Positions 25,893-56,357 of a stretch of DNA of 64,000 nt are shown here, one piece after another (position 1 is the stretch's first letter; the number at the start of each line of letters is the position of its first letter). The position numbers were made by a program, and so were the translations under genes. Source of the DNA: Pavona decussata (lineage: Eukaryota); assembly GCA_977016875.1 (NCBI GenBank), contig CDRNST010000123.1:2232001-2296000 (forward strand). The letters run 5' to 3'. The notes beneath the pieces are model-generated. The model was not told the origin of the DNA. It saw nothing but the letters and a program-made list of their open reading frames with translations, and ran no database searches.

Positions 25893-28718
25893 ATGAAGTC
25901 ACTACACTGGCTGCTTATCATACAGCTATTCATTACGTTTATTTATTTTCAAGGGAGCGACGGTAAGGTTTTTATTCACTAAGGTTATTCAAATTAATAC
26001 GTGAAGCAAGTAAGTGGCCCCGCTCGCCACGAGTCTCTCCGACTAGTATACCAAAGATCACGAGTACGATTCCATTCCTGTGAGTCTTTGCCGCTTTTTG
26101 TCATATGCTCATGGAAAAAAAAACATTTCACCTTTCTTGTTAAGTTAACATTTTATTCCGAAACAAGACAAAAGTTCCAAACTAACGATTGGCAAACTTA
26201 TTTCATCCTCAATCTTAAACTATAGGTACCTTGTGCAGACGCCCCGTGGATATAACCTTCGCAGTAGACGCGTCAAGTAGTGTTGGTGAGTGGGGGTACT
26301 CCAAAGAAAAGGATTTCGTTCGCAATGTCGTACGCCAGTTCGGAATCTCGCGGTCAGGGACACATGTAGCAGTCATTGTATACAGCACAAAAGCGAGTGT
26401 TCAAATACCATTAACTCGTCACTTCAGTTATCCAAGTTTCTTCTATGCTGTGGGACGCCTTCCCTATACCAGGGGAGTAACAAGGATAGATTTGGCACTG
26501 AAGACGGCAGCGGAAGAGGTGTTTGTTGAGGATGGAGGCTCCAGGAGCAATGTTCCAAAGATCCTGATATTGATGACGGATGGATATCAAACTCGCACAG
26601 CAGATTCGGTAGCGCTTGATAAGGCAATACTTCCTTTGAGAGCTATAGGCGTGCAAGTGTATGCCCTGGCAATAGGGCGCTACATCAAAGACTATGAATT
26701 GAGGTTGATTGTAGAGAAGAAAAAGAATATTTTTCGAGTCAACACTTTCCCTGGTATTATAAACATAGTAAGACGACTGACAACAAAGGCATGTGCAGAA
26801 GGTGAGTAAGTACTGAGCAAACCGAGCAAGACAAAACGTGCACTCTAATCATAATCATTTAACCCCAAAGCACCTCAGTTAATAGGCCTAGAAGGATGCA
26901 GATTTTACCCCCCCCCCCCCCCTCTTCCAATGTAGCATCGCGCATCTTAGCTATGACGATGCAATGAAACTTTGAAGGTATATAGTACTCACAATACGTT
27001 TTCCTTCGAGGCTGATAAATGGGATGATAATGACAAATGACGTGGTAATTACTATTCTCCATTTCTCCAAAAACCAGAAATCAAATTAAATTCGCCTTTT
27101 CATGAATGAAAATAAACGCAAAAAGAGACAAAAAGCTTTCCTAATGAAAATTTTATTGAGATATTAAAGTCTTTGCTTACGTTTCAAAATCGAAAGCGTA
27201 CAGACAGCAACACGCCAAGCGATGCGAAAAATTGGCCGAATTTATTCACCGAAACGGGGCACGTTTTTCAAACATTTTTTTAAAGTGTTAGGAATACGAA
27301 GAATCGGTCAGTTAAGACAGTAGATCAGTACAAATTCAAAAAAAACCTGTAGGCTTCGGTAAGGTGGATTCCCAGAGGTGCTCAACAATTTCGAGAAAGT
27401 CCGCGACTCCGCTGATGATTCCTCTTTGCTGTAACAAAACTAAAATCCGTTCTTCTGTTTTTCGCCTTAAAATCTTGGATATCTACTGTTATAGCTGTCG
27501 AGTAATCCCAAGAAATTCTCCTTTCGATTGACCGCTCGTGAACGTACATATCAATCCAAGAAGGCATAACTGATTTGGCACAGGTTCGGCTCGATGTCGA
27601 GTCGGTAAAGCCTGTAATTCTATGATCTCCAGATGATCACAAAATTAACAGCCCAGCAACTAACCGAATGATCTTCCAAACAAAACCTGTTCGATTACAT
27701 GCTAAATTAAAATTGCTCATTAAGGGACAAAAAGTCTTTCTCTCACTCCCCAGGTGAATTAAATTTGATAAACGGGGATGCCCAATAACGCATGCCAAAC
27801 CGCTTTGGAAAAAGCATGGTTTTATTAGTATTCTGGTGTTTTAATCTTTTTCTAAATTTATTAATGCAGGGAAAATACAAAATAAGGGCAAGTTCGCTAT
27901 TTTTCTTAATTGCGTTGAAAGTATCTATCTTCATCTTAGTCATTTTGGTGACCAAGCCCTTACCCTACTATATTCCAATTACTGCAAGTATTTTTCTTTG
28001 ACGGGTCATGCACATTCATATATTTTATTTTATTTTGTATTTTCTCTTATCTTGACTTCACTGACAGCTCTCCCTGTGGCCTTTGCCATCTTTCCTCTGA
28101 ACAAACAAACCCAAGGAAAAGACATTGGCGCACGTCGAGCTCCCACGGCTACTTTAAGCTCTGTGACTACTTTACCGGGACCTTACGGTAGACTCGGCGG
28201 ATCGTTTTATCTACAAGGAACATCCAACAGTTTCATCGACTTCCCAAACAGAGTTGGTGGCAGACTTGACACCTGGAGTTCCATTTCCATTTTTCTGTGG
28301 GTCTACCCCGAAGGGAGACCGGGTCCGATAATTAACTATCGACGGAGGGGACACGGTGTTGGACTTTGGTTGTCAGGAACACGCCTGCTTCAGGGACACA
28401 TTTACAGCCGTCGTTACTTTTACAGGAGAACCATGTATTTTTATCGCTTTCGCCCGAGGAAATGGTACTTTGTGGGACTAATGTACGATAACACCAGAGG
28501 CACTGCTGTCTTGTGGGTCAATGGTCGAGTGGTAAGAAGCAAGATTTCTATTTTAAATATAAAACTATTGGGCATAAAGCTTTGCCGGTGGGTTCGACTC
28601 GAGTCGAGGACCTGGAATCTCTACTTTAACCACCATTCTTGTGCAAAATGAGTAAGGGCTACTTATTTACATAACCCGAGCTTATCATTTATTATCCTCC
28701 CCTTCTCAGTCACTGCTG

Positions 28719-28789
<71 letters not shown>

Positions 28790-54600: not shown

Positions 54601-56357
54601 CACGTTGACTTTTGAAAAATTTTAACATCAAACAAAAAGGATACTAAAACTCTCATGGCAAACAAAAGAAATCATTAGAAATATGAAACTGTCTAATATC
54701 ACATTATGTTTCTAACTAGTAGTGTTTGTAACGTGTTTTAGGCACTTTCACCACTACCATGCCTTGCCCTCCCATCTGCTCCACCTCATGCGTGTCTAGT
54801 TGTGCACCCAGCTGCTGTTACTCACCTCCCCCAGCACCAGCACCATGTGTGCCAACAGCAATGAGTCCCTGTCCACTTCCTCAAGCCGCACCAACCCAAG
54901 CTCCTCGACAGACAAAGGTCCAAGCCAAACGACCAGCACCAAAATGTTCCCCAACTCCAGGTGGCACATGTGCTCCAGCAGCACCTTATCCTCTTCCTCC
55001 AGCATATCCTGCATATCCACCTCCTTCACCATGTGTTCCCACTTTGGCTAACAATTGGTGTCGGTCCAATGTGCTCGCTAAGCCTCTTGCAGTCAACAGG
55101 TTTATCCGAAGGCCAGTTACTTACAGGTATCCTCTTCAGCCATACAGACGCATCATGCCTAGGCTGGTATCGTCAAGGCCAGTGTCACGTGCCGTGCTAC
55201 CTTCCCCACAGGCCGGAGGATTTAACCCTTGTGCCCAGCCACCATGCCCTCCCCCTATGATGATGCCTCCTCCCCCTCAACCGATGATGCCTCAGCCCAT
55301 GATGCCTCAGCCCATGATGCCTCAGCCTATGATGCCTCAGCCCATGATGCCTATGGTAAGCAGTCACTCCGTTTACACTACTATGGTTCTACCACTACAC
55401 ACCTCAAACACAAAAAGGAGCGAAGGACGAAGGATATAAGGAAAACAGATAGAGCCTACTACTTATAACAAGACTATCTCTATTTCATACAGTTAGGACT
55501 AAAGCGCACGTGAAAACCTAAGATGTATTAACAAAATTGATTATCTGTGTGCATCTATCTGTCAGTTATTTCAAGTTAGCTGGAATGTTTGGAGGCCAGT
55601 TGATTATAATAATAGCTATTATCTAGTTTTTGTCATTGGGAGTTGTTCTGCTACATTTCTTTTCATGTTTTTGTCTGAATCTTTTTGACAGATGCCGCCA
55701 CCCTGTGTTCCTTCTCCTTTCAACCCATGTGCCCCCAAGCCTCCAGCTTCACCTCCACCCAAGAAAGCTGCAGGCAAAGTAGCAAAACCTAAGACGGTTA
55801 CTCTCCAGGGTTGTACCTATCCACCATGCAGCATAATGACGCTCCCAGCACCGCCACCTGTTCCAATGCCACCCCCTCCAATGCCATTTCCACCATTCTG
55901 TGGTGGACCACTTAGGCCGCCCTGCCCACCCCCATCCCCGCCAAAATCAGGTAAAACCAACTCTAAGAGCACAGCTCCTAAACCATGCGGTCCCACTCCT
56001 TTAAACCCGTGTGCACCACCAATGCCGATGCCCATGCCCATGCCAATGCCAATGCCGCCGATGCCAATGCCAATGCCGATGCCAATGCCGATGCCGATGC
56101 CGATGTCATGTGGGCCAGCCAATCCATGTGCCAAACCACCACTCAAGCCACAACCACCCAAGCCAATGACAATCAAGCTACCAGCTATACAAATCCAAGT
56201 TCCTCAACAGCCTCCAATGATGCCTCCAATGATGCCGCCAGTTCCACCCGCACCATGTCCACCCGCGTGTGGAAACCTTCCAGCATGTCCCACCACCTGT
56301 CCCAAGCCATGCTGCAGAGTCGGACGACGATCCGTGAAATCTTCCGACAAGGAATAA
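48656..56357 (+). CDS. NOWA-like copy C: signal peptide-acidic propeptide-CAP-CTLD-split SEA-CRD-Pro/Met-rich-CRD
   Basis: Exons 48656-48713, 49340-49384, 49771-49959 (poly-Asp), 50728-51156 (CAP), 51331-51354, (gap)51779-52166 (CTLD), 52810-52922, 53166-53230, 53475-53657, 54139-54305, 54742-55355 (CPPICSTSCVSSCAPSCC), 55692-56357 (CPPACGNLPACPTTCPKPCC). Same intron phases as copy B; no stops seen. Confidence 0.85.
51610..51778. other. Assembly gap (169 N) hiding the CTLD exon acceptor of copy C
   Basis: Run of N. Confidence 1.

Follow-up and report, generated by a model that had tools for sequence, protein, structure and literature searches.

A tandem NOWA-like gene family in the coral Pavona decussata, probably encoding structural proteins of cnidocysts

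NOWA, the nematocyst outer wall antigen of Hydra, reportedly goes back to Engel et al. in 2002. On re-examination it has been described as a C-type lectin with C-terminal minicollagen cysteine-rich domains (CRDs) that oligomerizes through disulfides (PMC10014300). Two other Hydra proteins, CPP-1 and Cnidoin, are capsule-wall proteins with terminal CRDs (PMC6910907, PMC4321713), and CPP-1 carries a polyproline stretch between its CRDs (PMC6910907). The view that NOWA is known mainly from Hydra holds for functional work. In Nematostella, however, NvNOWA-1 to -4 and a NOWA-related gene have been named and are reported to be differentially expressed between cnidocyte types (PMC12549020), and a derived NOWA-like gene has been detected in cnidocytes by in situ hybridization (PMC6161364). 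NOWA transcripts are reported in Acropora and Galaxea as well (PMC4320547, PMC7430897). The consecutive gene numbers of NvNOWA-2, -3, -4 and -related (PMC12549020 supplement) suggest a tandem cluster like the coral one described here.

The window, a 64,000-nucleotide stretch of P. decussata DNA, holds three members (copies A, B and C) of a tandem array that extends beyond it. The array consists of NOWA-like genes whose products are predicted to be secreted and, by analogy, are probably structural proteins of the stinging capsules, or cnidocysts. A tandemly duplicated anthozoan NOWA-like family, most likely of cnidocyst structural proteins, is the explanation that we hold with good confidence. 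The array spans ~190 kb and has a minimum of seven or eight genes, all on the + strand, with + strand CAP exons on C123 at 2.10, 2.15, 2.18, 2.19, 2.24, 2.26 and 2.28 Mb; one further family member lies on C103. Each CAP exon of the array is followed downstream by a lectin exon and then by one or two CRD-like motifs, and most members also have a SEA-like exon. Two CRD-like motifs with a spacer between them occur in every array member that retains its tail and in the C103 member, and copy A and array gene 4 have one motif each. In A, B and C, CAP and Lectin_C (Pfam) occupy adjacent phase-1 exons, the CAP-then-lectin order of the NOWA family. In B and C the ATG (25893 and 48656, respectively) opens a hydrophobic N-terminus, judged by eye to be a putative signal peptide, with a consensus donor behind it. 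The sequence-only reading had placed three CAP, C-type lectin and CRD paralogues at 25893-56357. The domains and three canonical CRDs bear this out, but only B and C lie within that span, A being at ~8120-15113; and while C looks intact, a premature stop interrupts B and A ends early. That reading took the proteins for NOWA/minicollagen hybrids, possibly capsule-wall or adhesive spirocyst components.

Copy B shows the most elaborate layout; its exons, like those of A and C, lie on the + strand. Exon 1 (25893..25962), with the start codon and putative signal peptide in an open frame, ends at a phase-1 donor, CG/GTAAGG. Exon 2 (26226..26801, also given as 26231-26809; donor AG/GTGAGT) encodes a VWA domain (Pfam E 1.3e-33) whose best PDB relatives are the collagen VI alpha-3 VWA and mussel PTMP1. 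Its MIDAS residues can be read directly, DxSxS as DASSS, the Thr in GVT and the Asp in LILMTDG, and metal binding is predicted from them. A LamG/ConA-like domain (Laminin_G_3) is split by one intron between exons 3 and 4 (28068-28531 and 29612-29789), which cover profile positions 7-105 and 105-151, meet at a phase-0 junction and are collinear with the Montipora foliosa protein P0187. Exon 5 (31308..31427, also given as 31274-31465; phase 1-1) is an EGF domain (Pfam E 5e-7, 30.3 bits). Pfam matches and the readable MIDAS residues uphold the head that had been proposed for this copy: a MIDAS-intact VWA, LamG and EGF. Exons 6-7 (31818-31913 or -31958, and 32089-32190), open frames with phase 1-1 splice candidates, form a short Pro/Thr-rich linker that has no Pfam domain and is the counterpart of the mucin-like linker in P0187 and in P0151 of M. 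capricornis. The core begins with the CAP (SCP) domain of exon 8 (32844..33278, also given as 32834-33283; Pfam E 4.7e-14), 80% identical to P0187, and continues with the C-type lectin of exon 9 (34706..35092, also given as 34705-35148; Pfam E 1.1e-16). Three putative SEA exons follow (35618-35730, 38035-38096 and 38919-39082), with consistent phases 0, 2 and 1 and collinear with the P0187 SEA. This region also contains an optional Pro/Thr-rich cassette (38332-38475), and a DDE_1 transposase fragment (36562-37002, E 2e-14) sits in a SEA intron.

A distance of 3 kb separates head and core of copy B, a partial, isolated VWA-LamG-EGF copy upstream has no CAP-lectin core, and copy C has a core without that head. 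These features would fit two neighboring genes, with their fusion an artifact of reading the exons in succession, but we regard this as very improbable. Neither a start codon nor a signal peptide was noticed in the open frames read ahead of the B CAP exon, and the linker exon joins the CAP exon in phase 1. A and B share a joint duplication of head and core, which are also syntenic at the related-species locus L016, where the order from VWA to CRD is identical, and the Montipora RefSeq models P0187 and P0151 unite both parts in one protein. Because the inter-module junctions are phase 1 with good consensus, the exon lengths add to a multiple of 3, the order is shared by A, B and L016, and P0187 is collinear, we treat B as one gene.

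The giant last exon of B (39698..43761) encodes the N-terminal CRD, a Pro-rich spacer, a relaxed C-terminal CRD and a polybasic tail, and closes with the stop codon (43759-43761). The spacer runs for ~1270 codons in three ~1023-bp tandem units with 14 CxPxxxNxC motifs. An in-frame TAA at 42778..42780, 328 codons ahead of the normal stop, deprives B of its C-terminal CRD and basic tail. The same site reads CGA in the sister repeats of B, Q in P0185 (94% identical) and R in P0186. Since the frame stays open for 327 codons beyond the TAA and the exon is intact in relatives (orthologous exons P0185-P0203), the stop is recent, allelic or an error, and B is a null or truncated allele or contains a sequence error.

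Copy A (8120..15113, by blastn) comprises EGF, CAP (9950-10399), lectin (11879-12274), SEA and an N-terminal CRD (14931-14984); its identity to B is 75-95%. The VWA and LamG exons of A precede the window at -12975 to -9531, which puts the gene start ~13 kb upstream. We take A to be an older truncated copy that has one CRD only and an intron carrying a Polinton-like insertion of 17.6 kb. It ends after "...YSGM", ~15 codons past the CRD, and the same stop at L016 means that A may be a genuine short form.

Could C be the only working gene, with A and B pseudogenes, decaying duplicates left by a recent segmental duplication? We think this possible but doubtful. The TAA in B, the additional partial VWA-LamG-EGF copy upstream, and the state of A, which lacks the spacer, the C-terminal CRD and the Pro/Thr cassette, stops past its CRD and carries the Polinton-like insertion, all point that way, as does a LamG dN/dS of 0.6-0.8. 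Yet every domain exon of A and B is open, and dN/dS in the lectin, SEA, VWA and CAP exons is well below 1 (0.07-0.43 for most A and B exons; 0.07-0.14 for the B lectin against A and L016). The shared stop of A and the open frame beyond the TAA of B, intact in relatives, argue in the same direction.

Copy C looks intact and constrained. It had been thought to start at 50661; its true start is at 48656, where a putative signal-peptide exon (48656-48713, MRGLLGISLLAFCLLVKA) is followed by an exon encoding an acidic segment (49771-49959), both with phase-1 junctions. These two exons are conserved blocks at the orthologous locus L015, and P0056 of Nematostella vectensis likewise has an acidic N-terminus. 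Exon 3 (50728..51156, also given as 50661-51239) encodes CAP (Pfam E 1.3e-5), and exon 4 (51779..52166, also given as 51779-52195) the C-type lectin (Pfam E 9e-15). Where the CAP-lectin intron ends, an assembly gap (51610..51778) cuts the 5' edge of the lectin exon: the N run begins after 452 nt of intron from the CAP donor (51157), abuts the open lectin frame directly and conceals the acceptor and ~2-5 nt of exon. The exon model sums to 2863 nt, so the reading frame of C requires the gap to contain 2 (mod 3) nt of exon, which agrees with the phase-1 junction in B and in another coral's orthologous locus. The counterpart of this intron at L015 is 1080 nt long; no letters were filled in. The SEA region has a first exon at 52810-52926, a tentative middle exon at 53294-53345 and a last exon at 54139-54305, with a Pro-rich insert at 53475-53657; it has conserved blocks in L015, an in-frame splice model and an insert-split counterpart in P0056. 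The last two exons (54742-55355 and 55692-56357) carry the N-terminal CRD, the spacer, the relaxed C-terminal CRD, a tail and the stop. The spacer is ~367 aa long and Pro/Met-rich, with (PQPMM)n and (PM)n runs and Cys pairs; the tail is short and weakly basic, in contrast to the polybasic tail of B. Against L015, dN/dS is 0.075 for CAP and 0.078 for the lectin (~0.08).

The canonical Cx3Cx3Cx3Cx3CC motif occurs three times in the window, at 14931-14984 (A), 39724-39777 (B) and 54765-54818 (C), and in 0/200 shuffles. The best PDB matches of the N-terminal CRDs of B and C are the NOWA CRDs 2HM3, 2HM4 and 2HM6 and the minicollagen CRDs 1SOP, 1SP7 and 2OQ9 (E 0.012-0.3 over ~20 residues), with 2HM6 on top for C. 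It had been claimed that two canonical CRDs bracket a spacer without Gly-X-Y. This arrangement is found in B and C except that the C-terminal CRDs are relaxed (43585-43650, Cx3Cx7Cx3Cx3CC, in B; 56256-56315, Cx3Cx5Cx3Cx3CC, in C), and A has a single CRD. The spacers of B, C and P0056 contain zero GxyGxyGxy runs, the mark of a minicollagen core. They are 22-37% Pro with a CRD at either end, which makes the tail, not the whole protein, a CPP-1-like module. For the SEA domain that had been proposed as an addition, the Pfam match is sub-threshold on the first SEA exon of B (20.4 bits) and of C (15.7 bits), but it exceeds the threshold in P0056 (28.5 against 26.4 bits), and a precomputed match exists for P0187. 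An AlphaFold model (P0105:308-442, pLDDT 69) has a beta-alpha-beta-beta-alpha-beta topology and only weak Foldseek matches, to Gpr126 (E 5e-3) and MUC16 SEA5 (E 0.026). These results support a putative SEA domain.

Like Hydra NOWA, the coral proteins are predicted to be secreted, carry a CAP/SCP domain followed by a C-type lectin, and finish with minicollagen-type CRDs and a basic end. Unlike its eight consecutive CRDs, they have two, of which only the first is canonical, separated by a Pro-rich spacer of 26 to ~1270 residues; they also place a putative SEA domain between lectin and CRDs, and in many of them a further head (VWA or PLAT, LamG, EGF, mucin-like linker) is added. No eight-CRD gene stands beside any CAP + lectin locus examined; this absence, the degenerate lectin motifs, the premature stop of B and the truncation of A all count against the explanation that we favor. 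With CPP-1 and Cnidoin the coral proteins share a tail in which a non-collagen spacer, polyproline-like in CPP-1, has a CRD at each end, a module that would be incorporated into the capsule polymer by disulfide exchange. CPP-1 and Cnidoin are described only as CRD-flanked spacers (PMC6910907), without CAP, lectin, SEA or head, whereas the coral spacers are much longer and have regular Cys pairs. The coral proteins resemble minicollagens in having terminal CRDs of the Cx3Cx3Cx3Cx3CC pattern beside Pro-rich stretches, but they lack a Gly-X-Y core, their length is 6-15 times greater and their N-terminal parts are large and globular.

The identity with putatively secreted CAP + lectin proteins ending in minicollagen-type CRDs, whose closest solved relatives are NOWA and minicollagen CRDs, stands, but the claim of new domain architectures does not. 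The B layout is that of P0187 from M. foliosa RefSeq (1691 aa, "uncharacterized protein"): VWA, LamG, EGF, CAP, lectin, SEA, CRD-spacer-CRD and basic tail, collinear and 60-80% identical to the B domain exons. P0187 differs in having a spacer of ~780 aa, against the triplicated spacer (three ~1-kb units) and stop of B, and in lacking the optional Pro/Thr cassette within SEA. The C layout is that of P0056 (XP_032226184.2, RefSeq name "proline-rich extensin-like protein EPR1"): signal, acidic segment, CAP, lectin, insert-split SEA, canonical CRD, spacer and relaxed CRD. The P0056 spacer (~500 aa, Pro/Met/Gln-rich) has PQQMM runs and CxPxxxNPC motifs in common with C, but CAP and lectin identity is only ~30-38%. 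Upstream array gene 3 has a PLAT-headed layout that is also known, from P0151 (XP_068742639.1, 1615 aa, "uncharacterized protein") and, without a recognized LamG or EGF, from Nematostella P0058. Intron-free 550-aa Logan proteins on 2.2-kb contigs in a relative, running from CAP through the C-terminal CRD, provide splicing evidence. Because the same layouts are already annotated in Montipora and Nematostella, the sequences describe a solid but ordinary gene family.

SEA, Pro/Thr-rich linkers, VWA, LamG and EGF are all typical of mucins and matrix proteins, the VWA has its closest PDB relatives in collagen VI and a matrix protein of the mussel byssus, and CAP + lectin also occurs in vertebrate CLEC18, with the Atlas lead at only 0.80. 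The genes might on these grounds encode general secreted matrix, mucus or adhesion proteins of gland or epithelial cells, with CRD-like motifs that cross-link outside cnidocysts. We find this improbable. To our knowledge, the Cx3Cx3Cx3Cx3CC module occurs only in cnidocyst proteins. Its best structural matches here are NOWA and minicollagen, CAP, lectin and CRD together are the NOWA signature, and Nematostella NOWAs are reported to be cnidocyte-specific (PMC12549020, PMC6161364). In a CAP tree without Hydra NOWA, all anthozoan proteins with CAP, lectin and CRD fall into a single clade (100/99), which includes the B CAP and is separate from multi-CAP proteins; the C CAP groups with P0056 and Actinostola P0179 (85/79). 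A further point against the favored explanation is that no Hydra NOWA-like protein is among the 150 best CAP representatives, where multi-CAP proteins rank higher partly because their scores sum over repeats.

The domains, motifs, gene order, conservation and orthologues behind the cnidocyst reading are shown by the sequences; subcellular destination, cross-linking, ligand binding and cell type we infer, with a mechanism modeled on Hydra NOWA, minicollagens and CPP-1. The proteins are laid out as a putative signal peptide, a variable head, the NOWA signature pair of CAP and C-type lectin, a putative SEA domain, and a presumed cross-linking tail. A and B have a head of VWA, LamG, EGF and a Pro/Thr linker, C has an acidic segment in its place, and at least one upstream array member, gene 3, has PLAT, LamG, EGF and a mucin-like linker. 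The full tail comprises a minicollagen-type CRD, a non-collagen, Pro-rich spacer whose length varies widely, another CRD of relaxed type and a basic end. Such a protein would be secreted into the growing post-Golgi capsule vesicle, where disulfide exchange by the terminal CRDs and the CxPxxxNPC Cys pairs of the spacer could lock it covalently into the capsule or tubule polymer, while the spacer would form an extended rod or tether. Glycans or further matrix partners, for example the chondroitin-lined tubule, may be bound by the lectin and by the VWA or LamG head; glycan binding is uncertain because the motifs at the sugar/Ca site are degenerate in B (EPT ... MSD) and C (QPT ... MAD). Separate paralogues of this family would probably serve separate capsule types.

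On sequence evidence, copies A, B and C form a real and well-supported NOWA-like gene family, but not a new architecture. The claim of the sequence-only reading that these genes combine CAP, C-type lectin and canonical minicollagen-type Cys-rich domains (CRDs) is borne out by Pfam exons, by CRD motifs absent from shuffles, by matches to known structures and by spacer composition. In the window (G000:C123:2232001-2296000, from a 602-Mb cnidarian assembly), Pfam recognizes, on the + strand, CAP exons in copy B (32834-33283, E 4.7e-14) and copy C (50661-51239, E 1.3e-5), and C-type lectin exons in B (34705-35148, E 1.1e-16) and C (51779-52195, E 9e-15). 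Copy B also carries the VWA, LamG and EGF domains attributed to it, with a VWA match at 26231-26809 (+, E 1.3e-33; MIDAS intact by reading), Laminin_G_3 split across two + strand exons (27998-28651, profile 7-105; 29612-29794, profile 105-151) and an EGF exon at 31274-31465 (+, E 5e-7).

A six-frame scan of the window found three canonical CRDs (Cx3Cx3Cx3Cx3CC, at 14931, 39724 and 54765) and two relaxed ones (Cx3Cx7Cx3Cx3CC at 43585; Cx3Cx5Cx3Cx3CC at 56256). In 200 local shuffles, the canonical motif never appeared, and the relaxed motif appeared 0.035 times per shuffle. Against all PDB sequences, both N-CRDs, which precede the spacer, matched the Hydra NOWA CRDs first (2HM3, 2HM4 and 2HM6) and minicollagen CRDs next (1SOP, 1SP7 and 2OQ9), with E values of 0.012-0.3, about the best attainable with a 20-residue motif. 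The described Pro-rich spacer bracketed by two CRDs also holds: Pro makes up 22-37% of the inter-CRD spacers, and Gly-X-Y runs sought there numbered zero. The last SEA exon, the Pro-rich exons and the spacers yielded no Pfam match. These Pro-rich spacers contain a C-x-P-x-x-x-N-[PS]-C motif, 14 times in B (39691-43761), two to three times in C (54742-56357) and four times in residues 598-1147 of the Nematostella protein P0056, which places Cys pairs at regular intervals between the two terminal CRDs. The literature searched apparently holds no discussion of this motif or of a linker-split SEA domain.

The three copies differ in their state, which qualifies their description as three paralogues: A is truncated, B bears a stop in the assembly and C is constrained. 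For all copies, exons were examined singly, and only phases and summed lengths were computed, with no joined protein built. Copy B reads on the + strand as a signal peptide exon (25893-25962), a VWA exon (26226-26801), two LamG exons (28068-28531, 29612-29789), an EGF exon (31308-31427), two Pro/Thr linker exons (31818-31913, 32089-32190), a CAP exon (32844-33278), a lectin exon (34706-35092), three SEA exons (35618-35730, 38035-38096, 38919-39082) and a last exon encoding CRD, spacer, CRD and basic tail (39698-43761). The inter-module junctions are in phase 1 with good donor and acceptor consensus, those within LamG and SEA are in mutually consistent phases 0 and 2, and the exon lengths total 6831 nt, a multiple of 3. 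We had considered 38270-38494 as a constitutive Pro-rich exon. However, the Montipora protein P0187 maps the middle SEA exon to 38035-38096, so this Pro/Thr stretch can be no more than an optional cassette. A SEA intron of B contains a fragment of a DDE_1 transposase (E 2e-14) at 36562-37002 (+).

The giant last exon of B consists of three tandem units of ∼1023 bp each, 83-97% identical. Its close relatives P0185 and P0186 also have three such units. There is a single unit (about 670-810 aa) in the orthologous exon of L015:306-2504, part of a related-coral locus orthologous to C, and in that of most other coral assemblies; exon-internal duplication therefore tripled the spacer of B recently. 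Within this exon, an in-frame TAA occurs at 42778-42780, where the sister units read CGA. The position is Q in P0185 (94% identical, 1270 aa) and R in P0186 (81%), and both of those frames continue through the C-CRD, as the frame of B itself stays open for 327 codons downstream, up to a normal stop. The assembled B would be left without its second CRD and basic tail; the premature stop is either an error of assembly or a recent allele that is null or truncating. The Logan proteins P0195, P0197 and P0200 were considered as transcripts of this exon and were discarded as genomic because they start with intron read-through.

Copy C had been started too far downstream. Its + strand exons begin with a signal peptide (48656-48713) and an acidic segment (49771-49959), followed by CAP (50728-51156), a lectin exon ending at 52166, a SEA region (52810-52926, a tentative exon at 53294-53345, a Pro-rich insert at 53475-53657, and 54139-54305) and two last exons (54742-55355, 55692-56357). 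An N run at 51610-51778 occupies the end of the CAP-lectin intron and abuts the open lectin frame, concealing the acceptor site and a few bases of the lectin exon. Since the visible exons total 2863 nt, keeping the model in frame requires 2 (mod 3) hidden nt, which is exactly what a phase-1 acceptor as in B would supply. In L015, the lectin exon starts 5 nt ahead of the corresponding codon, and the CAP-lectin intron is 1080 nt; this locus served for positions only, and no letters were filled into the gap. Continuity of the C frame across the N run is putative. Copy C is clearly under purifying selection, with dN/dS against L015 of 0.075 for CAP and 0.078 for the lectin, and every C exon except the tentative middle SEA exon is a conserved block in L015. 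Three blocks between B and C (46472-46620, 46753-47011 and 47615-48001) are also 71-77% conserved with L015; they contain no recognized domain and may be exons that escaped annotation or regulatory elements.

Copy A does not lie within 25893-56357, where it had been placed. By blastn, its VWA and LamG begin at −12975, upstream of the window's first base, and the gene resumes at 8120-15113, 75-95% identical to B. The interruption, ∼17.6 kb from −9531 to 8120, falls in the LamG-EGF intron, and its window part encodes Polinton-like proteins, including a Pox_A32-type packaging ATPase (2539-3177) and a fibre-like ORF (3190-5280). The insertion looks recent, since it is missing from L016, a related-species locus matching A in which VWA to lectin spans ∼8 kb. 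Copy A has no optional Pro/Thr cassette, and a stop occurs ∼15 codons past its CRD, after which homology to B is lost and a further stop follows; the first of these stops is also present in L016. All three loci, A, B and L016, have kept open domain exons, with dN/dS of 0.07-0.43 (0.6-0.8 for LamG). Given these open exons and ratios, A may be a genuine short form rather than a dead gene. Just downstream of A lies an LTR-retrotransposon remnant with gag-like, RT-like and integrase ORFs (16540-19160, − strand), and L016 has a reverse-transcriptase ORF at the equivalent position.

The proposed addition of a SEA domain is supported, although the window sequence by itself does not fully prove it. 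Scores of the first SEA exons, 20.4 bits in B and 15.7 bits in C, lie below the Pfam threshold of 26.4, whereas P0056 passes it at 28.5 bits. An AlphaFold model of an uninterrupted homologous segment (P0105:308-442; pLDDT 69) has a predicted beta-alpha-beta-beta-alpha-beta order. No PDB match of this model reached E ≤ 0.001 in Foldseek, whose weak matches include the SEA-containing Gpr126 ectodomain and MUC16 SEA5. A disordered Pro-rich/acidic insert separates SEA strands 2 and 3 in C (52926-54139), P0056 (432-534) and the Actinostola protein P0179. Autoproteolysis of mucin SEA domains occurs at this same position.

The window does hold three copies, but the family is larger, with four more members upstream on C123 and one on contig C103. 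The upstream CAP exons lie on the + strand at C123 2101611, 2151339, 2176076 and 2190935. Behind its CAP exon, each upstream gene (2.095-2.232 Mb, loci L001-L014) has a lectin exon that is divided in two, in contrast to that of A-C, and most then have a SEA-like exon. Three of the four end in a CRD pair 26-35 residues apart with a basic tail; the fourth has one relaxed CRD-like motif. At least one has a PLAT-LamG-EGF head, and partial duplicates upstream of the window include a lone VWA-LamG-EGF copy. The C103 member (200896-211471, − strand; loci L017 and L018) has CAP, a split lectin and two CRDs, one relaxed at 202303 and one canonical at 200896, followed by KDRK and a stop. Lectin matches on contig C143 were dropped, having no CAP or CRD within 10 kb. 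No eight-CRD gene was seen beside any examined CAP and lectin locus.

The layouts had been presented as new domain architectures, but RefSeq already contains them. The layout of B is that of P0187 from Montipora foliosa (1691 aa, "uncharacterized protein"), with precomputed Pfam VWA, Laminin_G_3, EGF, CAP, Lectin_C and SEA, an N-CRD at 818 and a C-CRD at 1616; it is collinear with the exons of B at 60-80% identity. The layout of C is that of P0056 (XP_032226184.2, 1147 aa), which has an acidic segment, CAP, lectin, SEA, a canonical CRD, a Pro/Met/Gln-rich spacer of ∼500 aa and a relaxed CRD, and which shares PQQMM runs and CxPxxxNPC motifs with C. A PLAT head occurs in Nematostella XP_048578328.1 (P0058) and in Montipora capricornis XP_068742639.1 (P0151, 1615 aa), where PLAT, LamG-like, EGF, a mucin-like linker, CAP, lectin, a SEA-like region and a CRD pair follow one another. 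The LamG-like region of P0151 maps onto the array's LamG exons, and among the upstream genes this protein is orthologous to gene 3.

A tree of CAP domains unites all these anthozoan proteins in a single clade (100/99), to the exclusion of multi-CAP proteins from Hydra, fish and fly. Its subfamilies comprise A and B with P0187 (100/99), genes 1-3 with P0151 (100/99), and C together with P0056 and the Actinostola protein (85/79); the C-type subfamily thus appears to predate the coral-anemone split. Logan proteins of 550 aa on 2.2-kb contigs run from CAP to C-CRD without introns and so must come from spliced mRNA of gene-3 type in Montipora-like samples. A protein homology search with P0056 (region 86-600) and P0105 returned almost nothing, Hydra NOWA being absent, with an insensitive word index. 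A protein atlas query with P0105 gave only vertebrate CLEC18-type clusters (score 0.80), a lead rather than evidence. With the same layouts already unnamed in Montipora and Nematostella RefSeq, and anthozoan NOWAs already published, nothing is overturned.

It is useful to compare these proteins with two known designs. Hydra NOWA, a C-type lectin whose C terminus carries minicollagen CRDs, oligomerizes through disulfides and is proposed to zip the invaginating tubule by multivalent lectin-glycan contacts (PMC10014300). CPP-1 has a CRD-flanked polyproline stretch and cross-links spontaneously by disulfides into the capsule wall (PMC6910907). The window proteins appear to unite the CAP-lectin plus CRD design of NOWA with the CRD-Pro-rich-CRD design of CPP-1. 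By analogy, the two CRDs and spacer Cys pairs (14 CxPxxxNxC in B) should tie a long Pro-rich rod into the polymer of capsule or tubule, leaving the CAP-lectin-SEA core and a VWA or LamG-EGF head exposed for binding. The lectin sugar-site motifs are EPN/WAD in the PLAT-type member, but EPT/MSD in B and QPT/MAD in C, which leaves sugar binding by the latter two uncertain. Nematostella has four NOWAs and one NOWA-related gene, four of the five with consecutive gene numbers, and the NOWA paralogues reportedly differ in expression between cnidocyte types (PMC12549020). Such differences fit a division of labour among the paralogues.

A broader proposal, which we consider unlikely, is that anthozoans build cnidocyst-type-specific walls or threads from one modular family. 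A constant CAP, lectin and SEA core would carry exchangeable adhesive heads (VWA, PLAT, LamG-EGF) and a CRD-bracketed Pro-rich rod of ∼26 to ∼1270 residues, lengthened by exon-internal tandem duplication and studded with the conserved CxPxxxNPC disulfide motif. Spirocyst threads, of which the molecular make-up is, to our knowledge, still poorly known, could then have the long-spacer proteins B, C and P0056 among their major components. The ancestral form of NOWA could be the one with two CRDs and not the eight-CRD array seen in Hydra. Overall, our work gives a clean comparative description of how a NOWA-like family is organized in a stony coral. Common to its array members are a CAP-lectin-SEA core and a cross-linking tail with two CRDs, while heads vary and spacer lengths differ up to ∼50-fold. 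The family offers raw material on how capsule types, nematocysts or spirocysts, gain differing mechanical properties.
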